Source of the DNA: Monocercomonoides exilis PA203
Taxonomy: Eukaryota; Protista; Preaxostyla
Reading direction: 5' to 3'
NCBI GenBank assembly: GCA_001643675.2
Contig: LSRY02000063.1
Coordinates: 1-64,000, forward strand
DNA length: 64,000 nucleotides
Each line of letters begins with the position of its first letter. The stretch's first letter is position 1. The notes under the pieces are model-generated. The model was not told the origin of the DNA. It saw only the letters and a program-made list of their open reading frames with translations, and searched no databases. Of the stretch, positions 24,431-58,259 are shown piece after piece. The position numbers and the translations under genes are program-made.

Positions 24431-24747
24431 TCTTAAATTTTTAATATAAATTATAATTGTTTTATTGCACGTGTAGATAAAATGCAATGTGGTTATAACC
24501 AGTTTGCAGTTTGGGAATAAACTAATTTTTGAAATTCTTTTTATTTTTCTTATTTTTCTTATTTGATGCAAATTTGTACCAGCATTAATAGTTTATAATT
24601 TTATTTATTACTCATATGCTGTGATGCTCAATTCTTTTCTTTTCCTTATTGATTGGAACTTAATATAAAAGCAAAGATTATTAACATTTGAAACTTATAA
24701 TTTAAAAAAAAAGTGAAATGAATTTTTTTTTTTGAAGAAATGAGCCC

Positions 24748-27700
24748 TCAACTCGAGCTGATGTTATAATAAGAGGTCAGCAACTGCTGCTGTTCTGTAG
24801 AGAGCGCAGCGCATGTCTGTGTCCATGCGCTTTGCGACCGGCAGACCCCAGCTATTTTCGACAGGACCTCGTAAAGACGCGTCTTCGCTTCGGCAGCAAT
24901 CGGATCTGAGGCAGGCGGATACGGCGATCCCATCGTCGGCACAACAGGATTCAGCGAAAGCAGCGCAGAAAGCAGCAGCGGAAGGTCCGCAGCAAACGGC
25001 GTGTAGTTGCTGGCCTTGATCATCTCGCATAGCCCCACCGCCGCCGACGTCACGGTGTACTTCCCCAGGTTCAGCGAGCGGTGCTCCACAGCCGCCAGGA
25101 AAGAGCGTGCCAGCGACGGACACTGCTGCAGGAACGACAGCGTCGGCAGCGAGCCAGGCGCAGCCAGCGCGGCCGCCACAGGCTGCGGGAAGGACGCCCC
25201 GACGCGGCAGAGGCAGTCTGCGCAGTGTGCAGCATACGCAAAGGCCGGGTGGTCGGGCGTGGCTGGCTCGTCCTCCCGCGACGGCACAGCCGAGTGCGGC
25301 AGCGGGATCGGCGCAATGGAGGTGGGCGTGGACGTGATGATCGGCGCTGCATACAGCATCATCGGCACCAGCGCATGCAGCATCTGCGGCAGAAACGGCG
25401 CCAGCGACGACGCATTCATGCACCCCACAATTATCTCGCTCGCACACCGCACAGCCGCCGTGGACACCGAGAAATGGCTCAGCGCATGGTCTGACACACG
25501 CTCAAAGTTCAGCGCAGGCGTGGGCGGCGGCTGGCCTGCAGCACACACACCAGCAATTCATCAAACAATTTTCGGTTGAAACAATAATAATAACAATCAA
25601 AAATAAAAAAACAAAACAAACCAGCAGCAACAATGTGTCCAGGGATCATCCGCAGCAGAACAAGCGGAAAGAGATCAGCCAGCAGCGACTGAGGCGCGGC
25701 AGAGATACCCAGCAGCGAGGCACACTCGCTTGTGCGGAACAGCTCGTCAGGCAGCTTCGTCGTGAGCGTCACCGGCACATACACCGCCAGGTTCATCAGC
25801 GTCTGCAGCGCCGACCGCAGCAGAAACGGCGCCCGCGACCGGCACGCCGCCATCAGCGCCACGGCAAACGGGCTCTGGATAAACAGCGCATTCAGCAGCT
25901 TCTCTGCCGGCGTCGTCTTGATGAACGAGCTCAGCACGTTGAACGCCGCCGTCGCCGACACCGCCTCGCTCTCTTCGTAGTTGTCCCCGTCGAAGTCCAA
26001 GTTCCACGTCTGCTGCACCGTCTTCCCCCGCGCCCGCTGCTCCGCCTCGTACCGCGTCTGCTCCGTCTTCTCCTCCCCAAGCACCATCCCGATGATCCCC
26101 GTGCAGTACTTGAAGATGTCCACCGAGTAGCTCTCCAGCGCCGCCCCTGTGATGTTGTGCACCAGGTTCGCAATCGACATCAGGATCTGCGGAACAAGAA
26201 TCTCGTCCTTCTGCGGCAGGTTGTACAGCTTCTTCAGCAGCTGCCCCATCAGCGCACTCAGCACCTCCGCCGACCGGAACAGCGCCCCCGCCGCATTCAC
26301 AATCGCATCAATCACCTCACACAGCGTCCGCACATTCCGCTTCTGGTACTTGTCGAACGCCACAAACACATTCTGCAGCAGCGTCACCACATACGGCCGG
26401 ATCCGGCTGTGCGCCTCTTCCACAACATAAATGATCGATGTGCACGCCGACCGCTGCACCTGTTTATTCCCCACGCAAACCCATCCACAAATAAATGAGA
26501 GAGAAAATGAATGAATGAATAAGAGAATGATAAAATTTGTTTCAATGAAAAATAAAAATAAAAATAAATCAAACCACTTTGAATGTGTCGAGCATCCCGT
26601 TCACAAACACCCCCAGCGCCTTCGTCAGCATCTGCCTGTCTGCTGCCCGGTGGATCGGGCGCCCAGCCTTCTCCATCTCCGCCTCCTCCTCGTGGTACCC
26701 GTTCTTCACATCCTCTGCGTCCAGAGGCCCGCACAGCCACCGCGCATACCGCCCCAGCGCCCAGTGGCAGATCATCCGGATCAGCGGGTGCTTGTCCTGC
26801 GCCAGGCTCTCCAGCCACGGCACCAGCGTCGGCACAATGCTCGCCATCGCCCTGTCCGTCGAGCAGTACTTCCCCAGCAGCCCCGTGCAGAACACCGCGC
26901 TCTCCCGCTCCAGCCACTTCTCCTCCCCTTCCATCTGCAGCAGCCGCCCAATCACTCCCGTCGCCGCCTGCACCACCTCCTCCGGGAAGTACCAGCTCAG
27001 CAGCTCAAACGCATTCCCGCAGTTCTTCCGCGGCGTCGCCGTGCTCGCCATCTGCTCCGCAATCGCATCGTCCTCCAGGTCTTCCTCGTCCCTCTTCTTC
27101 TGCAGCGCTGCCTCTGCCCCTGTCGTGTCGGCCACTATCGTCGGCGCAATGCTCTTGTCGTCGTCCACCCGGCTTTGGTCTGTGCTCAGCGAGTTTTGGA
27201 ACTCAAACAGATCCACATCGCTGTACTGCATCAGCTCTATCAGCTTCGGGATGAGACTTGAAATGGAACACATACACACAAACACACACACAAAATATCA
27301 GAATAATCAATAAAAAATTGAATGAAAATGAATTGAATGAATTTATTTCCTTTTTCTTTCAAAACTGATAAAAAGAGAGAAAGAATCACACATTGGAATC
27401 GCTTGCTTCACTTGTTCGTTTTTGATGAGAACATTTCCCTTCTCCCCTTCCTCCGTCCACGGCACCTCCACAAACGTCCGCACAAAGTCCACTGCCTCCG
27501 CCACCACATCCGCATTGCCCGACGAAAGATGGCTGATCGCAAACTGCAGCAGCGGCGTCAAATACGGCAGCAGTGGGTGTGTCAGCGGCGCCCCAGGCGA
27601 TGTGCACACACACGGAAAGCTCACAAGCGCGCTGAACGATTTGAACACCTCTTCAATCACAGCCGCCTCGCTGTGCCCGGCACACGCAAACAGACACTGC

Positions 27701-38415: not shown

Positions 38416-39810
38416 TTAAGAACTCGAAACCCAAATTTGGGGCTGGCCTTTGTAAATCTTGACGCTCAGGCCATGTTCAGAAACAGTTTGAGTTGCTCCT
38501 GAATACAGCTCCCTCACTTTTTCTCCTTGTTTGAACGGCAAGTATGTAACATTTCGAGAGATGATGTCATCGTACTTGTTGGTTGTGCACACCAATGTCT
38601 TTCCGCGAGAAAAAGCATAAAAAACATCATCAACGTAACGTTCAACATGAGACTCCTTTGGACTGATTTTCTGCCTCTGCTTAGAAGCCACAGAAATGAA
38701 ACGGTACAATTCGTGGTTCTTGTTCCATCCGGCTTTCCACATCGGCTCTCTGTTATTTGGATCGTCTCCTCCGTTGAATCCTTGCTCGGTTCCATAATAA
38801 ATCAGCGGAATAGACCCGCCAAGAATGTTGAACGCCAATGCATTTTTAAGAGACTTCCAGTCTCCGTTTATGTTAAGCCAGCGTTTGTTGTCGTGGTTGT
38901 CGATAAAACCACCGAGCAGTGACACATCAACTCCAGCATTTGCATATTCATTAAAGCGCTGGCGTAATTGATAGCATGACTGCCCATACGCATAGACATT
39001 CATCAAAGTATAGTACATTGGATATGAAAGCTGTCCTGGCATAATTCTCGTGTAGCCTTTTAGATAATCAACATTTCCATCAAATACCTCTCCCAGCATA
39101 TAAACATTTGGCACGCTTTTCACAAGTTCTGCCCAAAAATCTTTTGGTACGTGCTTTATTGTGTCAATTCGAATTCCGTCTAATGAATATTCATTGATGA
39201 TCCATTTGCACCATCTTATCAATTCATCCCTCACCCAAGGATTTTCATGTTTCAAATCGGGCATATTTGATAATCTGCAATTTTCAACTTCCCATTGATT
39301 GTCCCAGTGGTATATGTCGCATTTATCATGGTAGTGTTCAGGCTTGTTGAAGGGGCTAATTTTTGAAACATCATCTCCAACAGCTACATGATTAAAAACT
39401 AAATCGACCATCACCCAAATATCCTTTTGTTTGCATGCATTCACAAGGTGCTTCAAAGAGCTTGAATTTCCAAAATGTGTATTCAATGCGTAAAAGTCTG
39501 TTGCGGCATATCCATGGTAATTTTTTGGAGGATTTGCAACAATGGGAGATATCCAAATGGCGTTTGCTCCGAGATCTTTAATGTAATCGAGATGCTTTTC
39601 AATTCCTTCCCATGTTCCTCCGCAATAATCGTGGAGATCACAAGAAACACTTTGATTGTTTGACAGAGAGAATCTATCTGTTATTATTTGATAAATAATT
39701 CTTGATTTCCATTCCTCATTTGTTTTTCCAAAAGTTATCTTTTTTGACGTGCTATTCATGTGCAGAAGGAGAGCCACAAATAGCATTAAATTATTCCCAA
39801 CAAAAATCAT
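38416..39810 (-). CDS. Secreted GH13 alpha-amylase (Taka-amylase-like), intronless
   Basis: IYQIITDRF, YCGGTWEGIEKHLDYIKDLG, YHGY, DLVFNH; catalytic GIRIDTIKHV, GEVFD and FIDNHD; hydrophobic N-terminus. Confidence 0.95.
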   Translation of the reverse strand: MIFVGNNLMLFVALLLHMNSTSKKITFGKTNEEWKSRIIYQIITDRFSLSNNQSVSCDLHDYCGGTWEGIEKHLDYIKDLGANAIWISPIVANPPKNYHGYAATDFYALNTHFGNSSSLKHLVNACKQKDIWVMVDLVFNHVAVGDDVSKISPFNKPEHYHDKCDIYHWDNQWEVENCRLSNMPDLKHENPWVRDELIRWCKWIINEYSLDGIRIDTIKHVPKDFWAELVKSVPNVYMLGEVFDGNVDYLKGYTRIMPGQLSYPMYYTLMNVYAYGQSCYQLRQRFNEYANAGVDVSLLGGFIDNHDNKRWLNINGDWKSLKNALAFNILGGSIPLIYYGTEQGFNGGDDPNNREPMWKAGWNKNHELYRFISVASKQRQKISPKESHVERYVDDVFYAFSRGKTLVCTTNKYDDIISRNVTYLPFKQGEKVRELYSGATQTVSEHGLSVKIYKGQPQIWVSSS

Positions 39811-40282
39811 TTTTCCTATGCAATTTGAAATTTTTTATAATACTCTTGATCATAAAATCCAATTTCTCTTGACAAACAAAAATATGTTTTAATGAATGAA
39901 AAAATAAAAGAGAAATGCCACAGAAGTCATTGATTTAACTAAACCTTTGCGACAGACCGACATTTTCCAAAATGTTCGACAAGTCGACCGACAATGCAAA
40001 AATATTTCTGTAACAATTGAATTTATTTTCATTTTTTTTATTCGTTTTTTCTTTTCATGGTATCAAAATTTTTTGATTAATAAATAGAAAAACAAACAAA
40101 TCAACGATTATCTTTTTTTTGATGGAAATGACTAATTTTTAACATTTTGCTAATATGAATTTGATTTTTCATGGTTTCGAAATTAAAAAATTATCATTAG
40201 TCCATAAAAAATAACTTATTATCCTTTTTAACAAAAGATTTTCTATTTTTCATTTGTTTCAAAAATTCATTTTTTCGACAAT

Positions 40283-40333
40283 GATCAGTCGGTCGAATAG
40301 ATCAGTCAGTCGAACAGATCAGTCGGTCGAACG
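40283..40333. repeat. 3 x 17-bp subterminal tandem repeat (GATCAGTCGGTCGAAYA), putative transposase-binding array
   Basis: gatcagtcggtcgaata/gatcagtcagtcgaaca/gatcagtcggtcgaacg. The core is the reverse complement of TCGACCGAC, which occurs near both element ends (39984, 48391). Confidence 0.8.
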
Positions 40334-40359
40334 GAAAAATTGATTATTTGATAGATATC

Positions 40360-43300
40360 ATGATACAATTAACAACATATGAGGATTTTTTAAGAAGCTT
40401 GCCTTTGGAATTACAAAACAGTGCAAAATCAAAAGAAATCGTTTGAATTTAACATAATTCAAGTTTTGACAGAAACTTTTTCATTTCTTTTTTTTTCAAA
40501 AGAGTGCTGTATTAAGCAAAAAAATAGAAGAGCTGAAAAAATGTGATTGTTCATTTGTTGAGTTGGAATGTTCAAAATCAACAAATTTTGGAAAATGTTT
40601 GATTTTTTCAAGTTTTGATCAAAAATTATATCATTTCATTTGTTTTGATTATTATCCAGTTTACAGGCATCCTAATAACACTGGAGAAGATATAGGAAAA
40701 GTTCACTTTGAAATTCAAAAAAATTCAGTTTGGATAGCTAATACGCCTGTGAAAAATGATGGAACATTGAAAAAAGATGGACATATTTATTATTTGTGTC
40801 CAAACAGCAAAGAAGGAGTTAATTGTGGAGTTTCCGGAAGAAAAGGATGTGATCGAATAATTAATCATCAATGTCCCCTTATGACAAATTCATCAATCGT
40901 CAAATTTATGAAACAGAATCATCCTCTCAAACAAGCAACTTATTACTCAAACAAAAAAGAAGTTCCATTTCATTTTCAATATGATTTATTGAAAAAACAA
41001 TTTTTGAGGTTAATTGGACATTGTAACATTGCATTTTTGTCCGCTTATTCATCTGAGTTAAACAGTTTCATTTCTTCTCTTATACAGATTTCTCAACAAA
41101 ATCCATCATTTTCTCCAGAAACCATATTTCCAACATTGAATTACAGAAAACTATCAGCAATAATACATGACGAAGTGGAAGGTGCAATTAAAGAAAGGGA
41201 TGCTGCAATTTTCAATTCTTCAGTCGGTATTATGATTGACGGTGGAGTTATCGCGGGCAAAAAGTACACAGCTGTTACTGTGGTTCCGTTGAATCCAGGT
41301 GCAAAGCCAATGTTTTATAAATTAGTAAAAGCGTACTACACTTCCTTTGATTATTCGCAACTTGCAGTCAAAATTATGACCGAAATAAAAGATTTACACG
41401 GAGAAGTTCGGTGTTTTTGCACAGACGGCTTGCTTCCTCAGAAGCTTGCAATTCAGAGCCTTTCAGAAGAAACCACAACAGCAAAATCTTTGTCATTTTT
41501 CAAAGGAACACCACCAATTTTTATTTATTGTTGCAACCATTTATTAAACTTAGTTGTTTCTCATTTTTTCAACAACAACGAATTCTTTCGAACACAGAAA
41601 GATGCAATTATTTCATTTACGAAACAAGCGAAGGTGATTTCCCGAAGGCAACCCTCAACACCAAAATGCCCTTCATTCATTGAAACAAGATGGCTTTGCA
41701 TTTTTGATATTTGTTTTTTTATTAGAAAACATTTTCATGATGATATTTTTTCTGAATTACAGGAATTGATTTTTTTCGAAAATGTGATCAAATGTGAACT
41801 ACTATTATTTCCCTTAAGAGAACTTCAGTTACAGTTCGAAAAAGATGAAACGAAGTTAGGAGATGTATTCCCTCTGCTGGTGAAAGCATTTGCTCGCTTC
41901 TCATGGATGCAGGACCTTGAAGAATTCTCAGAAGAAAACTGGCAATCTGGTTTATGTGATATTATAATCCTTTTGTTTAATTTTTTTTGCAGGCGATAGG
42001 GGAAACCTGATCTCTTTGGCCTTTTCATTGACTCCTGGAGGGAGAAATAACTATCAAATGGGTTCTTTTTCTGAGTCTTACAACCAAGAATTGAAAAGGC
42101 TGAAAGCGAAATACGAACTTGTTTTTCGTCGTGAATCATTGGATCAAACAACGAAACACTCTGAATCAAAAACAAATCAACAAAACTTGATTCAAAAAAC
42201 TTCTGAAAAAAGGAATCCATTTTACACATTTGAGCAATCAAAACATATGCCATCCGCTTCTATTTCGTCTTCGTCCTTCGAATCCTTTTTCGATTCCTCC
42301 CCTTCGTCTTCATCTTTTTCTGATTCTTCATCAAGTTCGCCTTCAAATTCTTCATCGTGTTCTCCTTCAAATTCAACATCATATTCATCTATGAACGTAG
42401 GACAAATTTCATCAAATCAAGTTATCGATTATGATCCGAGAACTTTTATCTTCGAAAAACGAAATGACCGAAAAAAAGAATTATTTTCAAAAACCTCAAA
42501 ACAAATCTTTGAGTCCAGAAGTCCAATTGATAGCGATATTTTTCCAAATAAATAGTCATTCGTTTTGCCTTCTTCTTCGTCAACATACTCATCTAACCCT
42601 TTCACAATTGATTCGTTTTATTCAGCACTTCAGTCACTTAATCCATCACTCTATGATAACTCAAATAAAGACTCATCCATCATTCCTCCGTCAAATCAGT
42701 CTTCTTCAGCCAAAGTTTTTGAAAAAAAAGAAAGCTCATTTCCAGGATACTCTCGAATTGTTCAACTTCTTCAAATAATTGAAGAAAACTCTTCAACAAA
42801 ATGTGAAGAATCTTCTTTGAAACATGAGGAGAAAACAGATGAAACAGATGAAGATGAATATGGACTATTGCAAGCCGAAAGCGATTCTGAAGAAGATGAA
42901 TATACTGAAAAATCTGAGACCTCTTCGTCAACAATGAAAGAAAATGTTATTCACAACACTCGATACAAAAGGCGAAAAGAAAATGAAGATTGTTCTGAAG
43001 AAAAAGGAAAAAATGATACGGATGATTTGGATGATGATGAAGAAAAGAAAAATGAAGAATATGAAGATGATATTGTTTTCATCTGTTCAAATGAACAAAT
43101 TGAAATTGGAACTCAAAAAAATTTGGAGCAAAAAGTTAAAGAAACAAGAAACATACAAGAGAAAATTGATATGGACTGGTTCATAAGAATGAAAAGTGGA
43201 TTTCATTGTTATATATCAAAAGTGTTTCTAAACCAAACAGAAAACTTCAAGGAAAAGCTAGAAGCTTTGTATTCGTCATTTCTTCTTGATTGTCATCAAT

Positions 43301-43512
43301 CATATCTGCAAAATAATTTATTTGTGTTGTTTTCAGAAATAAGCAAATCTGGGATATTTCATTCGATATTTTCGAATGTTTGCTTCGCCTTGGTTACTTT
43401 TCCGTGTAGCGAAGCTTCTTGTGAGCGCCTCTTTTCTCGACTTCGACGTATTGTTGGTGATAGAAGACACTCTCTTTCTTTAGAAACTCTCAATAATTTA
43501 CTTTTTCTTTAG
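40360..43512 (+). CDS. hAT transposase (~1000 aa, 2 introns; one homopolymer frameshift ~41990 and one in-frame TAG at 42553)
   Basis: IMIDGG (D1), FCTDG (D2), YCCNHLLNL (CxxH), ETRW, and C-terminal dimerisation domain FPCSEASCERLFSRLRRIVGDRRHSL. Introns 40441-40502 and 40597-40659 give a continuous frame from ATG 40360. Confidence 0.88.
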
Positions 43513-44159
43513 CTTTTTTTTTTCATTTTTGTTCAATTAACGTGCTCCTTTGTTATGAATCATATTACGCTTTTAAATAAAAAGCTAAATCTTTTATTGA
43601 AAATTTGACAATTATCACTTTTTGCTTCACATCTCCACTTGTTCATAAACAAACATTTTTTTCTGATGTTGAAGTCGAATTTATTTTTCGATATGATGCA
43701 TTTTCAAACAAAAATTGTGAACATTCTCTTATTTGCTCGTTCACGAACAACATCTTTCTGCAAAAACATATGTTAACAATTTATGACGTCACACGTATGC
43801 TGACTTCCTCAAAAATTTTTCCAAATATCTATCTTCCATCTTCTCTTTAGTAAAACTTTTGATCATTCCAGCAAAAAAAGTTATAATCCTTCAACTGATT
43901 GAATAACTTCTAATTTTCTTAACTTCTCTAATATATTATTTCAAGATGTCTCAGGTTGAACATCTCGTGCGTATTCCATGAATCCGTTTTGCACGCTTCC
44001 GCTTTTATTTTGCTTTAATTTGCTATTTCCTCCAAGCTAATTGCATCTGATACAGTAAGAATTGTCATCCCTTTTGTGAAATGAACAATAAATTCTCTTT
44101 TTTGATCCTTCAAGCTCAATCTTCTTTCAGAATAATGCTGTACACATGATTTCTCAATC

Positions 44160-47100
44160 TCTTTCATTTAACTTCTTTCAATCTTAATCATATCTGCCCT
44201 TTCTCCTTTTTCAATCTTGTCTCCTGCAATCACAGCGTCGTTCTCACCAAACTGTATCTAAAGTGTCAGGCACTCCCACAGCTGCATTCCTTCATAAAAA
44301 GCCGCTGACTCCTTTGTTGCTCCCATGCTCTTGTTGATCATCGGCTCTGGCGCCTTCCACAGCATGGACTCTTTTCTGTTGTCCTCTTCATCCTCAAAGG
44401 CAGACGAAGGTGGTGGTGATTTTGAGAATCTCTCGCTCTTCACAGAAACATCAGAGGAAGAGGTGACAATTGTCGAGGTGGAGGAAAAAGTGGATGAAGT
44501 GTCTGAGTCTGAGGAGCAGTCGGAGTGGAGGGCAATGCAGATGACCATGTGCTCAGAAAACAGCACGATGTGAGGACTGAAATTGGCAAGAGATGAAAGA
44601 GGATTGTTCATTTCATCAAATGAGTGGAGTGCCAAATTGACCACCCAGAACAGGATCTGAGCAGCCGAGACTTCTCGCTCCTGAAGAGTGCCAATCGCCA
44701 TCTCTTTCTTCGCATTCCTTCCATGAAGCAGCATGAACAGCGAATCCCTCAAGTCCACAATCAGCTTCTCATGAGGCGAGGAGCAGGCCATTGCATCCAC
44801 CAGATTCGACATGGACGAAGTGGTTGGGCACAGATCCTCTCCTCAAACAAATGTCGTATCTGTATCTGAAGTATCTGTGGATTAAATGGATGGTGATGGT
44901 GTTCTTTTCCTTGCCTCTTCTTCAATATTCTCCAACATCCATTCTGGGATCTTGTCTGAGTCTCTTCCCAGAATGTATTCAGTGGAGCCACATTCACTCA
45001 GCAAATGCTCTGATGACTCTGAGTGTCCCAAACTTTTCTCGTACACCCTCTTCTTGATCCTCTCTTCATTCTTCTTCTCTGCCTCTCTTTCGGCTCTCCT
45101 CCACTGCTCCTCAGGAGACATCTCCATCGTCACCATCTCAAACGCCTTCGGATCATTCTTCATTGTATCATTCACAATCTCTCTCAAATCTTTCGCTTCA
45201 TTCTTTGCTTTTCTCCAACAAATTGAAACAATAACAGATTTAAACAAAACAACAAATATCGGACAAATAATAGTCCATAATGATTTCCGCTCTTTCTCTC
45301 CTTCAACAATTCTTTCATCTTCTTTTTCAACACTTTCACTCCTGTTCCTCAGCACAGCTGCTGAAGTGAAGGAAGAAGCATCTGCTTTCCCAAACACAAT
45401 CCATACACACACTTCTGTCTCTTCTCTAACTTTCTCTAATTCTGAAGACGAAATAATTGAATGGATCTCATTCTCCGAAATATAACCTTCTTCATCAATT
45501 TGCTTTCTCACTATTTCTTCTTCATCCCCTTTTTTCATGCTTATCTTCACAGACAAATCACATGGCAGAAGCAGCTTCCCATGAATGATCAACTCCAGTT
45601 CGCCTGTTGATTGTGTTGCATTCTTCACATCTTCAAGAACAGGAATAAAGAAGGGAGATGCTCTTTCAGCTGCTATCCCTCCCAATCTGCATCCCTCATC
45701 CAATATCCAAAGCGATGAGTTATCTTTCAGTCCATCTCCTCCTTTCACGCTCGCGACATTCAGTTCGCAATTCCCTGCGCAGATCACAAACCTTCGAGCT
45801 GATGGATATCCCTCAATCGATGGGTTGCAGTTCTCAAACTTTCCATTTTCAATCCTCACACTCCCTCCACTCACCCACAACCCACCTCCCTTGCTATTTC
45901 TGATTGTTGTTTCCTTCATCTCCACTTTGCTCTTCTCAACACCAACCAATGACCCATTCCATTTGCACAATCCCTCTTTTCTATTGTTTTCTTCATTGAC
46001 AAACTCATTTTCTTCTTCTCCATCAAACACACAATTCACAATTCTCACATCCTTTGACTGTCTAATCTGCATCATGCTTCCCTTGTCTACCGAATTCGCG
46101 CATTTTCCAAACGAGCAGTTCAGCACATTCACCTCTTGTTCAGCATCTTCCATCCCAATCACACGCCCCTTTGACATCAGAGTCATATTTTCAACTGCCA
46201 TCTCTTTCATCTCCACTTTCGCTTTCCCTCCAACACTCACAATATCTCCCTCACATTTGATATTCGATATTCTTGCTTCATCTATTGTTATATTCGATTC
46301 TTTATTGAACGAAAGCATTGATCTTGTTGAATGCAAGTCCCTGAATGTTGTGTCTGAAATCTTCAGCTCTACGCTTTCCACGCTCACAACCGAACTGTTC
46401 AACTTCGTCTCAGCGGTTGCTACTGAAGAGTAGAATTCATATTTATGGATCTCCATTGACCCGTTCTTCACTTTCATTATGTAGCTGTGAGTCGCCACAA
46501 ATGTATCTTCAAACTCGAACGAGCATCTCTCCGCAGCGCTTTCATTTATAAACTCCATGATGCAATCCTTTTCATCTTGTTTCGCTATATCCAATTTCAG
46601 CATCACAACCACCTGAGACTTTTTGTAAAAATTCACATTCAGATCCCGGATGGTGCATTCGCCCGAAACAACTCCTTCTCCGTCAATCAGAATCGTATTC
46701 ATCACTCCTTCCTGAATGTGATCAACCGCGCAGTTGAAACTGCTGCATGGACTGCTCTGTGCCCAGCATCGTCTGCCATCACTTACCGTTCCATTCACAA
46801 ACACATGAAGTCCATAATAATATGTTATCAACAGAATCAGATCAACATCTCCCTCACCCTCTATATCTCTCCCACAGATCGAGTTGTTCGAGTTCTGCGA
46901 TTCCTGATTGTTGTTCAACGCAAACAGTGTTTCATTGATCTGATGAGCGATCGAGTGGCATCTGACAAATATATCTTTTCCTGCATGAGCCTCATTCATC
47001 ATAAACAGGATGTTATCAATCTTGAATTTCAGAGGAGGATCCTGACTTTCATTTTCATAATTCGCATTTGGATTAGTCCCATCAATAAACAGCCCTCCAC

Positions 47101-47300
47101 TACGCTCTGATTCCGTCGAGCACTTGCAAATCAAAAAAGAGCTATCATTTATTTTTCAAAAATGATTCTTAGATCTTCACCACAACTTTCATCCCTCCTT
47201 TTTCTGTGCTATAAGCACTTTTGTAACTGTTCATTGCACACTCATCAAAAATGCGTTTTATGGAATTATCAAATGAGCCCTAAGCACTTACTCCATCCTT
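44160..47300 (-). pseudogene. Cargo: 5'-decayed copy of the receptor-kinase-like surface protein family inside hAT-1
   Basis: ORFs 44882..47134 (750 aa) and 44258..44812 align to the C-terminal ~1070 aa of the 2.7k-aa protein (NPSIEGYPS, EMVTMEMSPEEQWRRAEREAEKKNEERIKKRV, ACSSPHEKLIVDLRDSLF, WKAPE). Frameshift ~44885, TAG at 44258. Confidence 0.9.
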
Positions 47301-49129
47301 GTTTCATTCATTCATGTGCACGAAAATTAACGGTCATTAACTTTTAACACAGGGATTCAATTTTTTGTTTGGCTGTTTTTTTCAATATTCTGAGTTGATA
47401 AAACGCTCATTCCTTTTTCAAGTGCAATCTCATTTATCGAAATCATGCATCTCCTCCTTTTCCAACAATCTGATTAATTCGAAACAAAAATACAAATATC
47501 ACAGTTCAACTCATATAAAAACCTTTCACATATCACAATTATATTAGTCGCTTTTCAAAACTTCAATTCAATGTTGAAACAAACTTTTTGAACGCATTAA
47601 ATTCTGAGTAACAAGGTTGGAAAATAACTATATTTTTTTAATTGGATTTTTTGCATTCGAAAAGATTTGTTGAGTTCAAAGTCTATATATAATTCTTGCT
47701 TTTTGTTTTATTATCATCGAGATGACAAGAAACTTTATTTGAAAAGAGTTTTCAAACTTCAAAAACATTAGTTTATTTAGCAGTTAAAAAAAAAATCATT
47801 TTTCTGAAATATCTTTGAAAGTTCATTTTTTTAAACACAAAAACAAAAATTAAAATATTCAACAATTTGATAGAGAGTAATATTGATTTCAAAAACGTTA
47901 TTTGTGCATTCTTTATTCTCAAACTAATCTTTGAAATAATGCGGAAAATATTAAATCGAGAAATTCCAATATTACAGCGTGCTGATTTCTTGAAGTTGGA
48001 AAAAGGTAAATCTGAAGTTTAATTCATTTGTAAAATAAAGAACAAAAAGTTAATGATCAATTTATTTCGCTTTATTACTTTTAAGCCAGTTTGAAGATTC
48101 AAAAAGTTAAAATCTCACACATTTGTTTAGAATGCTTATAATTTGAAAATGCCATTCATCTGATACGAGTGAACTCAAAAATTCAGCCAGAAAGGATTAT
48201 TTCTCCAACAATAAAAAGATCAATTTTGTAATTATGGTGCTTTTATACGATAAAAATGAATACTTGAAACAGGTTATTTTTATATTTTAAAATTAAAAAT
48301 TAATAATGACAAAAATATTAAAAAGTCACCAAAATTTCCTAATACTGTGAAAAAATCGAAAAAATGCGATCTCGACATTGCACATCATCTTCGACCGACA
48401 CATAAATCAAAAAAATCTCTTGTCGCAAAGGCTAAGATTTAACTTCACTCGAAAAATATAATTTTAAAAAACTCAAATTTGTTAGCATTATATGTTTTTT
48501 TCTCAGAACTAACAAAAAAATGAAAGGTGAAGAGTTTTTGTTAATTTTTCACAAACGAAAATAAACATCTGCATCGCATGCCTTCTGACGTGAACATTTT
48601 TGGAGTGACGTGACGTGACCAGAAAAAAACTTTTTCAATTATTTAAAAGAATATTACTTTCATTAAAAAAGAAAATGCAGGTTATAATTGAATTTTATTC
48701 ACAATTTATTCTTTTTAACATTGGAATTTTATAATAAATATGTTTTGATTTTTCTTTGATAATCATTTGCAAATATTAATTCCATAATGGGTTGTCTCGT
48801 GATCAATTTTTTTATGGAATGAATACCATTGCACTTACGTCGCTGCATGTCACAGAAATGATTTAAGTCAATAGTCCATTTTTTCAAATGAATGTGGTTT
48901 TAACTTATTTAATGTCTTTGACAAAATTTTCATCTAATAAATATTTTTGTATTTATTGTTTGAGAATAATTCTTGTTTTTTCAAATTCACTTTTATTTTA
49001 TCTCACTCATTTGAATCATAAAAGCATGTAATTCACATAGAAGTGAAGTATACGAACGATACACTTATGTTAATTCAATCAATGGTAAAAGTTTTGAGGT
49101 GAAACGAAAAATGCCAACTGCAGGGAGGC

Positions 49130-50443
49130 ATGGATAGCTACTACGGGAATGTGCGTGGTGTGGTGGGTGTTTGGCAGCTAGTAGGATATTTAAAAAAGTG
49201 CAGAACAGTGGCAGGGCAGGTTGCAATGGCGATGGAATTGAAATTATTGGCGTTTGCTACGATATTTGAAAATGGAAATGTGAAGTTGGGGAGGAATGGA
49301 GGATGCGTGCTGGTGGTTGATGAAAGGGAGTGCAGGGTGAAGAAAACGAGAATAGTGAATTCGTTTAAGGGAGGGATTGGGCAGCGCGGGGGCATAGTGG
49401 TGGTGGTGGACAGCGTGGAGTTTGGGGACAACAACCCGCTGATCGAGGGGTATCCGTCGGTGCGGCGGAACATGGTGTGCAGCGGGGGATTGGTAGTGGA
49501 GGTGCAGGGCATCCGGAACGGGGAGTGTGCGTGGGAGAGCGGGTCGTGGTGGATCATGGAGGAGGGGTGTGTGGTGGAGGGTGCGAGTGGAGGGGCAGGC
49601 GGGGGCGAGCGGGTGAGGACATACCTGTTTGAGAGCACAGGGCAGAACACAGAGCGGTGGGGATACGGGAGGATCGGGCGAGAGGTGATTGAGAAGAGCG
49701 GGGCAGAAGAGGAGGTGCTGGTCTGGGTGGTGAATTTGAGAGAGGAGCTGGCTGTGGAGGAGTGGGTAAAAGGAAAATGAAAGGAAGTGAGGGTTGGGAA
49801 GGATAAAGAAAAAGGAGGATAGTTCTCTGCGACTGCAGCGAATGCGCTGGAGGGGAAAGGGGAAGGTGCAGGCGGGAGGCTGAGTCTTCATGAGTGGTGT
49901 AGGCAGCCAATCATCCTTTTTATTGGGATGAGTGAGGTGGGGATGGTGATGGCGGCGATTGAGCGGTGCTGTGTGTAGCCACGGCGGCAGGTGGAGTCTG
50001 GGGAAAATATTCTGGGGCAGAACCGAGAGAAGCATGAAGCGGCGTTAGAGCCGGTGAGGATGTTCGGGACAGATGGGTCCTAGATGGTGGTGCTGCTGAG
50101 TGCGCTTGTGCAGGACAAGGAGGTCGTATTAAAAGAGCTGAAGATCAAAACGGAGAGTGAAGGTGCTGAAGGTGTCGAATGAAGAGATGAGAAGAAAGTG
50201 AGGATGAAGCAAAGGAGATTCATGATTGAAATGAAAGAAAAGAAGGAGGTGGAAGAGAAGAGAGAGGATAAAAGGCAGAAGATAGAGGAGAAAGAGAGGG
50301 AGAGGAGAGGAGAGAAGAAGGGAAAGAAAAAGCAGAAGATAAAGAGGAGGAAGTGGAAATGGATGATGAAGATGAAGAGGAAGGAGAGGAAGAAGCAGAG
50401 AGAGGGCTGTGGAGAAATATGCTGCGACAGTGATTTTTTTTAA
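49130..50443 (+). pseudogene. Degenerate GC-rich fragment of the same surface-protein family
   Basis: NSFKGGI..EFGDNNPLIEGYPSVRRNMVCS..WWIMEEGC corresponds to NSPDGGI..FSSNNPSIEGYPSMRRNIICS..LWMLNEWC; downstream frames are broken. Confidence 0.7.
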
Positions 50444-50827
50444 ACATAATTATAATAAAGTATTTTTAATTAATATTCATGGATAACAATCTCTCAAGTC
50501 AATTATAAACCGAACAACATATCAAATATATATATATATATATTTGCAAAAAAAAACAATTGTTTAATTGAAAGGATAAAATTGTCTTTTGAGAATTGAA
50601 AAAATGCAATATGAAAATCATAATAATGATGTCAATTTTTGAAAAAACTTATTAAGCTTAAAAAATATGAAAAGTATTTATTTTTATAAAAATGACAAAT
50701 AATAATAATGAGAAAAAGAAAACAAAACTTCAAATAGGGTAATTTTTTTATTAGTACTCATTTTTTTCATAAGAACACAAAATTTTCGAAATGAAAAAAC
50801 AAAATTAATAAAAAAAAATAAAAAATT

Positions 50828-52290
50828 CTAATCAAATTTGCGTATGACTTTTCTTTTTCCCTCACCTCGCTCAATTTTATCAGATGATTCTTTCTCCATA
50901 TCGTTCTCATCTTGAAGTATTTTGAATTTTCTTTGCAGCTTTTTTGTGAAATTCATTGTTTCATCATATTCTTCATCAGAAATGTTTTCTAATTTATTTT
51001 TCATTTCGCTTTTCTTTTTCAAATAATCATCCCACTCTTTTGGCACCTTTTCTTCTGTTATTTCTTTGCCGCAGAAGTCAAATCGATTTTTATGTGAAGG
51101 AAGAGGATAAGTCGATGCTAGAGGAAGCTTCATTGTGAACAACTCCAATGATTCTTTCAGCATGCTTCTGCACTTAATTGCTCTTTTTGTGACTGAAGGG
51201 AATGGAGCTGAATGAATTGATTGCTGCAGTGCTTCAATCAGAACTGTTCTCTTCGCTGCTGAAGACGACGACGAAGGCGCTTTGCATTGAGATCTCATCT
51301 CAGACTTCATGACTGCGAATACGCCTCGGTCCAGTGGCTAACAGATGTGTGTGCTGTGAGGGACGAATGTCACAACATCCACATTTTCTTTTTTGAACTC
51401 TCGCCAGATTGTTGGATCTGCTCGAGAAATGTGGGAGTCGATTAGAAACAAGCAGTGCGATTCGTCGAGTGACATGCGTTGCCTTCTTTCTTTGATCAAA
51501 GGGAGAAGAATTGTGAGTGCATATTTTCTGAACGAAAAAGATTCCATCCATCCGCATTTGTTTGCAAAATCTCAAGATTTGAAGATTGAAAAGGCTTCAA
51601 GTCATCAGGAAGTTTGAGAATCGGCCTCAGAATCACTGAAGGAAGTGATTGACCATCAGCTGCAACCTCCGCAATCAGTGTGGAATTCGCCATTCGCTCC
51701 GCAAATTTAGCGAAACCGGGTTTTGCATTTGCAGGATGAACAAAATTCCAATTGGAGCTACCGGGGACCCTGAGTGATGACTCGTCTACGTTGAAAATCG
51801 GTGCATTGTTGTTATTATTGTTCTAATGAAATCCATTGAGCATATCATACCAGGACTTCAGAACTTGTTGGCATGAGACGGCAAGTCTGTTTGCATCAAC
51901 AATTTTCGGCTTTGATGTCTTCAGCTCGGTATGTTTTTTTGATGAAATCGTAGGCAACTGACACAGAAACTTTAACATCTGGTGTGTTTTCTGGTCAAAA
52001 ATTATTTTCAACATTTTCAATCGAATTAAAATTTATTAATGCATTTCAATGAATATTTATGCAAACCAGTTCACGCATTTTCTTGATTGTTAAGCTTGCT
52101 CCAGACAGTGATTCTATTTTTATTTCGTCCAGCACTGTTTGCTCCTTTTCGCCAATGACCACAGCAGGTCTTCTAATGTTTGAAACAAATCTGCCTTGCC
52201 GAACAGCCTTCACCTCACGCTTGATTTGAATTTTGCTGAATTTTTCGTTGTCGTATGTATCCACCATACGAACAGTTCCATCGTTGACTA
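50828..52290 (-). pseudogene. pogo/Tigger-like (DDE_1, CENP-B-type HTH) transposase remnant, main part
   Basis: RRPAVVIGEKEQTVLDEI..SLTIKKMRE (HTH-like), IFNVDESS, LFLIDSHISR and FVPHSTHIC*PLDRGVF are characteristic DDE_1 motifs; frameshifts and stops present. Confidence 0.85.
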
Positions 52291-52582
52291 TAGGCCTTTG
52301 CAACATACTGACTTTGTCAAATTGATTCGACAATTTGACCGACGATGAAATTCAAAACTCTTTTTAGAATCATTTATTTGGAAAATTAAAAAAAAATGAA
52401 TAACATTTAATTTCAAATATTTTTTTTGCTCTATTTATTTTGAGAATTATAAAAATGAATAATAAAACATGAAAATGCTAAAATAGTTTTTTTATTGTCA
52501 AATCAACAGATCTTTTCAACTTGATCATGTCTAGATCAATCTGTCTGTTGAGATCAGTCGGTTTGTCGAGATCATTTGAATA

Positions 52583-55562
52583 ATGAGTGACATAACTCAA
52601 AATGACTTTATTGAAGAAGTGCCGATAGAATTACAAAGATCCTTGTCAGCGAAAAATATTGTTTGGCAATCTTATTTTATCCCAGCGTGTTTAGTTATTT
52701 ATTTTATAATATTATTCATCTTTGTAGCTTGAAGCGTTTGAAAGAAAAGTTGAGGAATTGAAAAACAATGAATGCTCATTTGTTGAATTAGAAAGAACAA
52801 ATATGTCAAGCAGTGGAAATTGTATGTCTTTCATTTAACTTTTTTTTAATTTGCATATATCTTTTCAAAAATTAGTCTGCAAACACCCAAATAACACTGG
52901 AGAAGAAATTGGAAAGATTCACTTTGAAATATGCGATGGAAAGCTTTGGTTGGCATATACTCCTGTCAAGATGGATGGATTGTTAAAAAAAGATGGACAC
53001 ATATATTTCTTGAGTCCAAACAGCAAACACGGTATAAACTGTGCCATCTCCGGAAGAAAAGGATGTGACAAAGTTACAAATCATCGATGCGCATTGACGA
53101 CTGCATCTTCTATTTTGCCATACTTCAAGTTTCATCCATCTTCAACTTGATTTTCTGAAGTTCCTTCAAAGAAAATTGTTCCAACTCATTTTCAATTTGA
53201 TTCATTAATTGAACAATTTTTGCATTTAATTGGTTACTGCAATATTGCGTTTCTTTCTGCTTACTCCAACGAATTCAACAAATTTATTTTTTCTTTATTA
53301 TCACTTCTCAACAAAATCCAACTCTTTCACCGACAACCATATTTCCTGCTCTCACATATAGAAAGCTGACAGCACTTATTCAAGAAGAAGGAAAGAAAGA
53401 AATTGCCAATAGAAATACAAAGATTTATAATTCAATGGTTGGCGTCATGATGGATGGAGGTGTTGTTGCAGGAAAAAAATACACTGTCATCACTATTGTT
53501 CCGTTGCAGACAAAGGCATCTCCATTTTTCAGGAAAATTGAAAAGGCATGCTTCACAACTTCCGATTATTTTCATCTAGCAAAAGAAATTATTGGAGAAA
53601 TAGCTGATTTGAAAGGAGAGGTGTGCTGCTTTTGTACTGAGGGCTTGCTGCCACAAAAACTCGCAATTCAAAGCTTCACAGATCAGACAAATTCGAGCTC
53701 AATCACAGAAACACGGAAAAAAATTTCTCCTCTATTTGTTTACTGCTGCAACCATTTAATTAATTGAATTGTCACGCGCATTTTTAAAGATAATTCATTT
53801 TTCGTGCAATTAAAAGAAGAAATAACGTCATTTTCAAAAATTTCAAGTAACGAGTCCACGAAAAATCCATTTTTACAGAAATGCCCTTCGTTCATTGAAA
53901 CAAGATGGCTATATCCTTTTGACATGTGTTTTTTATTTCATAAAATATAAACAATATCTCATTTACAGACTATTTCTGCAAAGAAAAAATAGATGACGTG
54001 ATCCGATGTGAATTATTACTGATACCTCTGAAACAACTGCAATTGTTCTTTGAAAAAGACTATACAAAGCTTGGAATTGTGTTTCTAATTATCCTTAAAT
54101 CTATTGCGCAATACATGTGGTTGCAAGATCTTGAGGAATTTTCTTCCCCCGATTGGCAATATGGAGTTTGCTTTATTGTAATCCAACTGTTCAATTCATT
54201 TTTAGGGAAAGAACGAGGAGATCAAATCGCTTTGGCTCATTCCTTCACTCCGATTGGTACACTTGACTATAGAAACGGTTTGTTTTTAAAATCTTATTCA
54301 ACAGAGTTCATGATATTGAAAGAAAAAATACAGATCTTTCAAATGTTCATCAGTGTTTTCAAAGGATTCAGATCAAACTCAAATTCAAAGGATGCGTTGC
54401 GATTCATATATTCAATCCACAAAAGATATGATGCCAAGTAACCGGAACTTTCTTTGTCCTTCGAAAAAGGTTTCAGATTCTATATCTTTAAAGAATCAAC
54501 CGAAAAAGTTACAAGCAATTTCTCGTGTCATGGAAGGAAAGAACAGCAAAGATCAATTTTGGTAGACAAACAATTAGCTCTTTCATTTTTTTCGAAGAAT
54601 GAAAAAACTAATTTTCCGACTAATTTTCCTCACCCAATATTCTCTTCTTCATTATCAGTTGAGACTTTTTATTCTGCTCTTCAACTAATAAACCCAGAAA
54701 ATGATAGAATAGTAGAAGCAATTACCGAAACACAAGTTCAATTTCAGCCGCTTCCAAAAGATTTGCACTCTGCATCATCGGCTTCGCCAATCGATAGCCA
54801 AACAACAGTTTGCTGCATTTATTAACTCTTTTGACAGAAAATTCACTTATTGAAAAAGAAGCAATTTTGAATGAAGAGAAAAGCCTCGATGAAATTGATT
54901 TTGATGAAACAGGCATTTTTCAAGCAGAAAACGATTCGGCGGATGATGAATATGAGGAATGCTCTAACATTTCTGAACGAAGCGAACAGAATTTTTCAAT
55001 TTATGAAACAAGAAATAAACACTCACATATCGAAGAAAGTGATTCACAATCAAATTCAAACGAAAAAAAGGAAGATGAATGTTCAGATAATGAAAAAAGC
55101 CTTTCAAAAGATGATTATGATGTTGAAGAACTCGGTGAAAATGAATTTATTATCACAGACTGCACGAAGACAACAGAACAAATTAAGAAAGCACTTTCAA
55201 AAATCCAACAATCTATTTGCATGGACTGGTTTTTCCGATTGAAGTCAGTATTCAATGATTATTTGTCCAAAATATCTTGTTTGAAAGCTTCTAGTCATAT
55301 TGAGAACATTAGAGCTTTATTTTCATCAATGTTACTGGATAATACTCAAAACGTGGATCATACTAATACTCAAATTTTCTATTCTGAAATTTTAAAGCAA
55401 GAATCAATATCCACAATTTTTGCAAACATTTGTTATTCGTTGACGATGTTTCCGTGCCGCGAAGAATCTTGTGAAAGAATTTTCTCTAGCTTGAGACGAA
55501 TTGTTGGAGATAGAAGGTTCTCGCTTGAACCAGAAACACTCAACGCATTGCTTTTATTGTAG
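52583..55562 (+). pseudogene. Degenerate hAT transposase, paralogue of 40360-43512
   Basis: HPNNTGEEIGKIHFEI, MMDGG, FCTEG, YCCNH, ETRW, SCERIFSSLRRIVGDRR; introns 52661-52727 and 52822-52875; several stops and frameshifts. Confidence 0.9.
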
Positions 55563-56450
55563 AAGTTTATATTTTTAACAATAAAACATTCGACTGCTAT
55601 AGCTATCTTTTTTCATTTCAGTGAAGAATTCTGAATATATTTGAATTCAAATGAAATTTCTTGACAAACAATGAGGTTTGTTGAACAAAGTTTGCAATTG
55701 AAATTTCACTGAACTGTTTTTGAAACAAACTTTCGATATTTATCATTAATAGAAGAATCTTATTGTGAATATGTGGAATTGTGAGTTACAAATACGAGGA
55801 ATGTCAAATATTCTTTCAAACTTCCAATCAAAAACAATATTTCAGTGCACAAATATGTTCGTTCTATTTAATTTATTTTTCTACTCCGTTTTCAGATGCT
55901 TGTTATACACATAAATCCATTTAACAACGTTTGTTAAACTTTTATTTTGTGTTCGAACGTTTTTCATTCTGCAGAATGAAGAGCGATGTTCATAACTGAT
56001 AATAATTACTATTCATCTAAAATTTTCTGAGAAATAGTATTTTTTCATATCGCCAATCAAAAGAAAGTTTGTTTGCAACATAATGGTCTATTGTTCATCC
56101 AGTTTAATAGTTCAAGTGGATTCAACTTTGAGATAATGCTTCAATTGTTTATTAAGGAATCAGCATTTGTGAAATAATTGTTTATATATGTGAATGCAAT
56201 TAAATATAGATTCTTATTGGAAATCACGAATAAAAAATATTGTATATAGATGAGTTCAAAAGAAATAATGAAATTTATCTCCATTGTTCGATAACTCTCA
56301 CGAAAAAAGATAATTCACAGGATATATTATGTTAATGCGAAGTGAGTATTGGTTTTTGTATCAATTAATTAATTAATTATTAAATAAATAAGAAAGCAAA
56401 AAAATGTAGAAAAATTTTCTAAATTGCAGTTAAAAAATGACAAAACTCCT

Positions 56451-57620
56451 TTAACATTTTGCAATATAATAAAATAACCACACAATCTCAAAGCTTGAAA
56501 CGACCTCAAGAAGCTTCAGACAAGTTTCTGATATTTTCTGCCTTTTTCTTGAAGCAATCTTTTTCCGCTTCATCTTCACCTCATACTCCCCATACGGTAC
56601 TTGAAGAGTCAGGCCCTCCCACAGCATCATCCCAATCAGGAACACAACAAACTCCTTCGTTGCACACATCTTCTTGTTAATCTGCAGCTCGTGTGCCTTC
56701 CACCTCAGACACTCTTTTTTGAAATTATCATCCTCCTCAAACGCTGATATAGGAGTTGAAGAATCTGTGAATCTCCCTCTCATCAGTGAGATATTGGAGG
56801 AAGAAGAAACAATTGTCAATGAAGAGATTGATGATGAACCCCTGTCCGAAGAACAACAAGAATGCAAGAAAACGCGGATCACCATTTTCTGAGAAGAAAA
56901 TAGTGCGAAAATCCGTATTGTTGAGCTTTGGCAATTCCATTATCTTATCAAACGAGTGAAGCGTTCTATAAATCATTCAGAGCATGATCTGTTCAGCTGT
57001 TACTTTTATCTTTTCCTGTGACCAAATTACCATATCTTTTGAAATGTTCTCAATCAGGAAGAGAATGTTGTAAATAACTCAAATTAACAATCAGCTTATT
57101 CAATTTAAAAAAAAAGGCACCACATTGATAAGGCTTTCAAATGATACAGTTGTAAAATTTTATTTCTTGATAAAAATTAAAATTTGTTAGAATAAAGAAA
57201 AAATGAAGAAGACACTTGGAAAAAAAAAATCATATCGCACCATTTCATTATTTTTTTTTTCATCTGCTTTTTCATGCAACCAGCATAAAATATTATCTAA
57301 ATCGTGTAAATTTTGACTTCTGTATTTCTGCTCTTTGCCAACGAGCAATCAGAAAAATCGGAAATAACTTTAATCTTATCCAAAAATTATTCATAAAAAA
57401 AACTAATACTTTTCAGTTTCCTTCGACACTCTTCTTTTTTCTCTTCCTCGTTTAAAATCAAAAAGATGAATCGATTTCATAATGACAAAAATATGATAAT
57501 GAACAACAATACAAACAATTGCAATAATTTAATATATGAAATGATTATTTATCCATGAAATCTCTCCAATCGCTCTTTTCTGTTTTTTTTCCTTCAATTT
57601 AACATCATTCGAACGTGAGG
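56451..57620 (-). pseudogene. Cargo: decayed TM + kinase-like tail of the receptor family inside hAT-2
   Basis: SAFEEDDNFKKECLRWKAHELQINKKMCATKEFVVFLIGMMLWEGLTLQVPYGEYE; upstream remnants TLHSFDK and KLIVNL, plus a hydrophobic TM-like remnant near 57480-57540. Confidence 0.85.
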
Positions 57621-58080
57621 AAAGTTGAGCTTGCTAAAGAAATCAATCAACTTTGATTCTTCAATTTTTTCATCATTGTTGACAAGTGAAAATCAAATCA
57701 GGAATTTCACCTTTTGTAGTTTGAAATCAATAGAAATAACGAAAGTTGAAAACTACATTTATAATGACAAAACCAAAATGATACAAAAACAGATACAATA
57801 AGAAACAAGGATTTGTTTACAAATAAATTCTCCTTTTTTCAAAAAACAAACTATGATAGCTGAAACTTCTTTTCATATATATGTGAGAACTGCGGTTAAC
57901 AACATATTTAAATTGATAGGTCATAGTTGAAATGAAAAACAATATTGATCAATCCCATATCAACATGATCAATCTCTTATTAATAATATTGTTATGAAAA
58001 TAATCGAAAAGTTTTTATAGAAACAATTAAACAAGAAATAGATAAATTTGATTCACTGTTATTTTATTATTTTTTCATTT

Positions 58081-58114
<34 letters not shown>

Positions 58115-58182
58115 ACATATCGACACTAGTTGATTTTTCGACCGACACAAAACACAAAAAATATAATTGTCGCAAAGGCTCA

Positions 58183-58259
58183 GTTAACTATGTGCGCCAT
58201 TCTCTCCAGCGGATTCCGAAATTGCCTGTATTTGTCAAAATTTTTATGTAAAGTGACAT
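58183..58259 (-). pseudogene. Displaced 5' end of the pogo-like transposase
   Basis: Reads ..FDKYRQFRNPLERMAHIVN and joins DGTVRMVDTY at 52282 in frame once hAT-2 and one TSD copy are removed. Confidence 0.8.

Follow-up and report, generated by a model that had tools for sequence, protein, structure and literature searches.

We analysed the first 64 kb of contig LSRY02000063.1 of Monocercomonoides exilis PA203 (hereafter, the window) and found that it carries two diverged DNA transposons of the hAT superfamily, E1 (window positions 39940-48435) and E2 (52291-58182), in each of which a transposase on the plus strand converges with a piece of a giant receptor gene on the minus strand. The receptor piece is a cargo that has been moved with the transposase of a whole clade of such elements, and its sequence does not follow the history of the elements that carry it. 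The best explanation, to which we assign a probability of roughly 75%, is that E1 and E2 are broken members of a hAT family which otherwise remains autonomous, and that this family captured its receptor piece once, long ago, after which ectopic conversion or template switching with receptor genes recurred, the cargo being a passenger that conversion has kept recognisable. The genome was searched in an assembly of 82.3 Mb in 101 contigs (PA203, Oxford Nanopore Technologies (ONT) reads with Pilon polishing), and every protein match came from M. exilis.

The ends of both elements are well defined. The 11-mer CCTTTGCGACA, with at most one mismatch, occurs exactly four times in the window, at 39944 (+), 48421 (-), 52295 (+) and 58168 (-), and all four matches are the termini claimed for E1 and E2 in the correct orientation, compared with a chance expectation of 0.82 and with none of 100 shuffled sequences reaching four. 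E1 begins with the 15-bp terminal inverted repeat (TIR) taaaCCTTTGCGACA at 39940-39954 (+) and ends with its counterpart at 48421-48435 (-; reverse complement ttagCCTTTGCGACA), and it lies between two identical copies (8/8) of the target site duplication (TSD) gatttaac, at 39932-39939 and 48436-48443. E2 is likewise delimited by taggCCTTTGCAACA at 52291-52305 (+) and by a right TIR at 58168-58182 (-; reverse complement tgagCCTTTGCGACA), and its TSDs, gttgacta (52283-52290) and gttaacta (58183-58190), match at 7 of 8 positions. The presence of the 15-bp TIR TARGCCTTTGCGACA at both ends agrees with the short TIRs of the hAT superfamily, and so does the TSD length of 8 bp, which was found not only in E1 and E2 but also in ten more two-ended copies (8/8 each) and in a sister copy of E1, L031 (7/8). 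Among 12 TSDs counted by eye, a small sample, position 2 was T in about five and position 7 was A in about eight, the hAT preference being nTnnnnAn. The 12-mer GCCTTTGCGACA of the TIR is present 153 times in the genome, compared with 2 for a control.

The subterminal sequences and the internal order of the two elements are also shared. The left subterminal region of E1 (39955-40090, +) contains conserved GTCGACCGACA and CGAC[AC] motifs; the first 150 bp of E1 holds five CGAC[AC] motifs against 0.13 per 150 bp in the interior, the enrichment in the terminal 150 bp being 20-40 times, and a GTCGACCGACA-type motif lies 35-55 bp inside each end at a position kept in all subfamilies. E1 and E2 are collinear, the transposase region 40375-43536 corresponding to 52595-55586 and the receptor-tail segment 44189-44734 to 56532-57066, on the minus strand and at an equal distance from the left end.

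A Pfam search identified the hAT dimerisation domain, Dimer_Tnp_hAT (PF05699), at the C-terminus of the plus-strand series of open reading frames (ORFs) in both elements, with scores of 25.3 bits for E1 and 24.1 bits for the copy L017, which are above the cut-off of 21.4 bits, and of 19.7-19.9 bits, just under it, for E2 and the copy L036. Pfam returned nothing for the transposase beyond this domain, and PDB, searched with one transposase sequence and also with a profile of 12 sequences, yielded no matching chain, Hermes included. Across 12 transposases, the residues D267, D329, C364-x-x-H367, R417-W418 and E984 (in SEASCER) were invariant, and they fit what we take to be the hAT signature, an RNase-H-like DDE core with CxxH and RW. 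The two diverged hAT elements of the original prediction, with their 15-bp TIRs, 8-bp TSDs and common layout of transposase and converging receptor sequence, are borne out.

The transposase of E1 (40563-43512, +) is split into three ORF pieces of 478, 179 and 315 amino acids by one frameshift and one stop, and it is 93-96% identical at the amino acid level to copies with intact ORFs of 984-1016 amino acids. That of E2 (52595-55586, +) remains as at least four ORF pieces of 110-250 amino acids, with 90% nucleotide identity to the copies L015-L019, which have intact ORFs of 923-924 amino acids. Therefore, both window copies are defective. In the genome, a query with the N-terminus of the E1 transposase gave at least 306 candidates, 92 of which were scored; their identities to E1 fell into tiers of 93-96, 77-84, 64-67, 57, 54, 52 and about 36-47%, and many had open frames of 900-1060 amino acids. 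Cargo-bearing copies encode transposase ORFs of 900-1016 amino acids.

The cargo could be identified by alignment with R1, an intact receptor gene of 2713 amino acids that lies in the window but not in a hAT element (14003-22141, -). R1 has a beta-helix ectodomain, a visible transmembrane segment and a partial PK_Tyr_Ser-Thr C-lobe, which covers only positions 163-256 of the 258 of the profile (E 1.6e-8). The E1 cargo (44039-47155, -) aligns with residues ~1634-2683 of R1 and represents the last ~3 kb of an 8.1-kb gene; its Beta_helix score of 24.3 bits is just below the Pfam cut-off, an in-frame stop lies at 44882-44884, there are four stops in the tail alignment, and the annotated gene model on it covers 44885-47002 (706 amino acids). 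The E2 cargo (56529-57306, -) is a decayed remnant of the receptor tail, with stops and gaps, that corresponds to residues ~2455-2634 of R1. The usual cargo is ~1.1 kb long and consists of the transmembrane segment and the cytoplasmic kinase-like tail, the parent genes being 8-12 kb. In every cargo copy but one, C21, the tail alignment contains 1-9 in-frame stops, even where the transposase ORF is intact; the fragment boundaries vary by tens of residues among subfamilies, and there is no conserved start codon. Almost every cargo copy is thus a pseudogene, whereas the transposase frequently remains intact. The multi-kb receptor gene that had been proposed as the cargo is accordingly replaced by a fragment; the proposed number of six receptor copies or fragments in the window was roughly right.

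The RNA data were short Logan contigs from a single study. None of them covered the transposase part 42436-44235, and the conserved tail was covered by pieces at 95-99% identity, which fits paralogues. The right-arm parts 47134-47356 and 47843-48075 were matched by RNA contigs with 0-2 mismatches, which is no more than a hint.

To determine how general the cargo is, we relied on a sample of 21 transposase-bearing copies and three short elements, for which DNA was taken around 19 further copies. Receptor sequence was present at the same place and in the same convergent orientation in every one of the 18 copies examined whose transposase identity was 57% or more (16 from fetched DNA, and C51 and C10 judged by coordinates), in addition to E1 and E2. 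In the E1 subfamily these include the 8.5-kb L031, which has the layout of E1 with the long cargo (form B); the 6.0-kb L032, L034, L035 and L036, with a cargo of ~1.1 kb comprising the transmembrane segment and tail (form A); the 10.6-kb C52, which has a nested insertion; and C21, in which a left end and transposase are followed by 5.7 kb of receptor sequence, with no right TIR within 20 kb. C80, in the 77% tier, has form B, and C69 and C15, in the 64-67% tier, have tail cargo. The 57% tier, to which E2 itself belongs (82-90% nucleotide identity to E2), is represented by C17a, C2, C58, C91 and C20a, of 6.0-6.5 kb with tail cargo, and by C51 and C10, which have a tail match at the expected offset and strand.

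Matching 8-bp TSDs were found outside the cargo in 11 fetched two-ended copies, which makes 13 with E1 and E2, and these TSDs were all different. The independent loci with cargo inside the TSDs are E1, E2, L031, L032, L034, L035, L036, C52, C17a, C2, C58, C91, C20a and C69, and L032, L034 and L035 are 98-100% identical outside the cargo. Element and cargo have therefore been transposed together many times, with the cargo inside the TIRs and TSDs, as the original prediction had stated.

The cargo has a limited distribution within the superfamily. By tblastx of the element interiors against the window, no receptor sequence was detected in the 54% subfamily (9.2-kb elements) or in the 52% copy, and three elements of 3.6-4.5 kb with the same TIRs contained neither transposase nor cargo. 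A branch of the transposase tree (support 84/82) has the cargo-bearing copies on one side, and among them even subfamilies with no more than 55-57% transposase identity share the position of the cargo. The right arm of form A is partly homologous to that of the 57% subfamily, that is, between the E1 and E2 subfamilies, and the short form is therefore the ancestral layout. Form B, whose specific right arm (47156-48420 in E1) is AT-rich, has no receptor homology and is present in ~5-6 genome copies, is derived.

Some of the sampled elements have features of their own. The 54% subfamily (~9.2 kb; C8:59043-68036, C20:1288797-1298169 and C36:1063170-1072405 of the assembly, G000; loci L025-L027, L045 and L046) has, behind the transposase, ~5 kb of other sequence that is 87-95% identical between two copies and contains ORFs of 200-290 amino acids without receptor homology; this extra sequence may be a different cargo. 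The short elements L051 (C33:989960-993653), L052 (C25:828799-832872) and L053 (C1:2388745-2393276) have the family TIRs and subterminal sequence and ~70% mutual identity, with a perfect TSD (8/8) in L051 and none in L053. Pfam found nothing on the extra ORFs of the 54% and 52% subfamilies or on the short elements. The C21 copy (G000:C21:142654-152400; loci L037 and L038) consists of a left TIR, a broken transposase and two minus-strand receptor ORFs of 1121 and 788 amino acids, and it is probably a recombinant of hAT cargo with a genomic receptor gene. The C52 copy (L033/L039; C52:362400-373060) is a form-A element with a perfect TSD that is split by a nested insertion of ~4.5 kb, in which a plus-strand ORF of 906 amino acids is partly receptor-like (78% nucleotide identity to nucleotides 6088-6989 of R1).

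The most informative evidence on the history of the cargo came from the comparison of closely related elements. E1 and its sister L031 differ at 66 of 4252 positions (1.6%) in 39940-44209 and at 36 of 1873 (1.9%) in 46561-48435; the tract between them (44210-46560, -), inside the cargo, differs at 460 of 2326 positions (19.8%) and is read as a tract replaced by gene conversion. Third codon positions hold 52-63% of the mismatches in this divergent tract (p ~1e-11 to 1e-12), and its indels are mostly multiples of three, a pattern that reads as the signature of two functional paralogues and not of neutral decay. Other groups gave the same picture: the overall identity of C2, C17a and C58 is 98-99%, against 74-89% in the cargo, that of C91 and C20a is 98-100%, against 72-87% in the cargo, and L032 and L034 have one patch at 59.5%. 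Elements that are 98-99% identical elsewhere thus differ by 12-26% in the cargo. Moreover, the amino acid identity of the cargo between elements is 65-81% whether the transposases are 98% or 55% identical, and the cargo is 80-88% identical in amino acids to more than 100 intact genomic receptors, which is as near as to the cargo of a sister element. The cargo sequence therefore does not follow the history of the element. A comparison of transposase and cargo phylogenies had been proposed as a check on the original prediction, with separate later insertions as the explanation of any incongruence; the incongruence is present, as judged from pairwise identities, and its cause would rather be the overwriting of a positionally conserved cargo.

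These results suggest the following history. The ancestor of one hAT clade would have transduplicated the 3' end of one giant beta-helix receptor gene (annotated as 'protein tyrosine kinase'), the captured piece of ~1.1 kb, with the transmembrane segment and the cytoplasmic kinase-like tail, coming to lie downstream of the transposase in convergent orientation. What is expected of transduplication was found in the genome: host coding sequence inside the TIRs and TSD, intact parent genes outside, and co-transposed copies at different sites. Functional receptor paralogues would then have been, again and again, the partners of the cargo in ectopic gene conversion or template switching, and the most plausible occasion for this is the homology-directed repair of the gap that hAT excision leaves. 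In the form B lineage (E1, L031 and C80), the cargo would by the same process have grown to ~3 kb, reaching into the ectodomain, and the one-ended chimera C21 with its 5.7 kb of receptor sequence would have the same origin. Retroposition was also considered as the route of capture and was rejected, since a poly(A) run close to the right end (58085-58112 in E2; form A has it too) is on the wrong strand and side for the tail of a cargo mRNA. This run is on the plus strand, ~70 bp inside the right TIR of E2; in the right arms of form-A and 57%-subfamily elements, its position is conserved across subfamilies and its length is variable.

Several points weigh against this account. The excision-repair mechanism is inferred and not observed. 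No donor with more than 84% nucleotide identity was found for the tract of E1 or L031 (best 82% and 84%, among the 40 scored of ~1,190 candidates); therefore, a single recent conversion from an extant assembled gene is not shown, and many short patches or lost or unsampled donors must be assumed. Pure neutrality leaves it unexplained that a pseudogene fragment has been retained across deep subfamily divergence. Furthermore, the RNA contigs, being short, say nothing on the strand or on the copy that is transcribed, and the census is a sample of the size given above.

A part in the biology of the receptors would account for the cargo differently, with a small but real chance of being correct. 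The receptor fragment could be a mobile homology handle for two-way exchange with more than 1,000 receptor genes, by which tail or ectodomain variants would be moved and rearrangements like C21 seeded, or read-through from the convergent transposase gene could produce antisense RNA to the conserved tail, by which the element would modulate the family as a whole. If either were true, transposons would take part in diversifying or regulating the main surface-receptor repertoire.

It is improbable that selection keeps the cargo as a second working gene of the transposon, which might encode, for instance, a membrane-anchored but truncated pseudokinase tail in the role of decoy or regulator. Such a gene would explain why none of the copies examined from a clade with 55-98% transposase identity has lost the cargo or has it elsewhere, and it could be seen in the ORF stretches of 205-383 amino acids (750 in E1), in the gene models on the cargo of E1, L031 (MONOS_9687) and C80 (MONOS_11157), and in the RNA-library contigs that match the right-arm sequence specific to E1 and L031 with 0-2 mismatches. 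However, the in-frame stops in all copies but one, including those with an intact transposase, the lack of a conserved start codon and the variation of the boundaries among subfamilies are at odds with a maintained protein, and the low-dN-like pattern, that is, few nonsynonymous differences, would be expected anyway if the sequence were imported from functional paralogues.

The incongruent cargo trees might also be taken as a sign of several independent captures of the fragment at one and the same site, each in another sublineage, and the variation of the boundaries by tens of residues among subfamilies and the unrelated right arms of forms A and B would agree with this. Against such repeated capture, which we hold to be similarly improbable, the position, orientation and approximate breakpoints are equal in all copies, the right arm beside the cargo is homologous between the E1 and E2 subfamilies, and the orthology of the junctions on both sides of the cargo is already partly seen. 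In addition, the divergent E1/L031 tract lies inside the cargo, the 5' side of which (46475-47155) is 93-100% identical, and this fits replacement within an existing cargo.

An artefact of assembly or polishing with ONT and Pilon in a family of more than 1,000 members is an unlikely source of the mosaic, and we regard it as slightly less credible than repeated capture. The assembly went through ten rounds of Pilon (PMC8767320), and a patchwork made in polishing would leave both tracts, as is the case, with no single donor above 84%. However, the tract is one contiguous block of 2.35 kb with sharp edges and in-frame indels of 6-15 nucleotides, the mosaic recurs in four independent element groups, and reads from paralogues should map best to their own assembled loci. 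The cargo proteins of L031 and C80 (MONOS_9687 and MONOS_11157) are, moreover, identical in NCBI and EukProt, and the EukProt set is presumably the older one based on 454 reads.

The original prediction further held that a multi-kb receptor gene is co-mobilised with the transposase and that the hAT family may have driven the growth of the receptor family. Queries with the receptor tail gave 1,189-1,457 first-look candidates in the genome, about 100 of which were scored per query, and the scored tails were 75-90% identical and mostly located in open frames of 2,200-4,200 amino acids. Although the cargo lies inside the mobile unit and the C21 copy adjoins 5.7 kb of receptor ORF sequence, whole-gene mobilisation is largely refuted and very improbable, because no two-ended element holds more than ~3 kb of an 8-12-kb gene, C21 lacks a right TIR within 20 kb, the ~1,200-1,460 receptor-tail candidates (more than 1,000 loci) compare with tens of cargo-bearing hATs, and the 91 intact receptors that were sampled are all outside the listed hAT copies, with ~2 of them within 5 kb (by eye). 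An element with only a 3' fragment is unable to duplicate whole genes. Expansion of the receptor family by this transposon is not supported, and the claim is removed; the observation behind it is confirmed and its interpretation partly supported, in that the cargo-carrying hAT family is real and its cargo is a fragment.

The receptor genes themselves are often arranged as near-identical convergent (tail-to-tail) inverted pairs a few kb apart, and the open frame of one of the two is usually much shorter. In the window, R1 is paired in this way with R2 (2274-10403, +), a frameshifted, near-identical inverted copy that is not in a hAT element and is 98-100% identical to R1 along most of its length; other examples are C32:695649/698657, C9:716099/720287, C58:236585/245457, C21:848321/853637 and C26:835595/841114. 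As for the surroundings of the elements, 130 bp separate the left end of E1 from an intact alpha-amylase gene (38416-39810, -; Pfam Alpha-amylase, E 1e-55). The region 23800-27300 is GC-rich (49-53%, compared with ~35% elsewhere) and has overlapping ORFs of 200-320 amino acids on both strands without a Pfam match; Pfam returned nothing on window ORFs at 24-37 kb.

The 'protein tyrosine kinases' of M. exilis are among its largest gene families and overlap 28.9 Mb of 'unclassified repeats', and DNA transposons make up 3.72 Mb of the assembly (PMC8767320). The genome paper does not contain the term hAT, and its three mentions of transposons are unrelated to cargo (PMC8767320). Up to a third of the genome is taken up by the parent family of the cargo together with its unclassified repeats (PMC8767320), and the elements described here represent a natural experiment on that family: the transposon backbone dates each copy, and the 10-fold excess divergence of the cargo measures the rate of ectopic conversion. 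It also follows for annotation that at least three gene models of 'uncharacterized protein' (the window's own, MONOS_9687 and MONOS_11157) are transposon cargo.

There is ample documentation of gene fragments captured by DNA transposons in plants, and by hAT elements in some fungi; for metamonads or M. exilis, we found no report of such capture in the literature. The closest known case is the transduplication of histone H3 by a complete hAT in the Dothideomycete fungi Pseudocercospora fijiensis and Pyrenophora tritici-repentis (PMC6710886, PMC3538342). That system resembles ours in that an element with its own transposase holds a captured host coding sequence between its TIRs and multiplies it along with itself, most of the copies being inactivated. 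The two differ in the cargo, which there is a whole single-copy housekeeping gene and here, in a metamonad host, a 3' fragment from a family of more than 1,000 genes, and in the mode of decay, which is through RIP (repeat-induced point mutation) there and through ordinary stops here; the repeated overwriting by paralogues has no counterpart in the H3 case as its abstract presents it.

The Pack-TYPE elements of plants (Pack-MULE, Pack-CACTA and Pack-hAT) are non-autonomous by definition and often mosaics of several genes, and their capture is thought to run via template switching in repair (PMC8903248, PMC6379663). The family described here resembles them in mechanism and, like them, consists of TIR DNA transposons that hold and move host gene fragments between their ends; unlike them, it has one fragment, which is common to the whole clade and stands beside an intact transposase in autonomous copies. 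Since the cargo-bearing copies encode a transposase, the family is not, in the strict sense, a member of the Pack-TYPE group. A third parallel is found in Arabidopsis, where, reportedly from work of Hoen et al. in 2006, Kaonashi (KI-)MULEs carry a ULP1-protease-like gene that is expressed and apparently selected. In both systems, a captured host fragment has been propagated and kept through the diversification of a DNA-transposon lineage, but almost every copy of the hAT cargo is broken. The novelty of the hAT family lies in its host lineage and parent family, and most of all in a cargo that is overwritten repeatedly.

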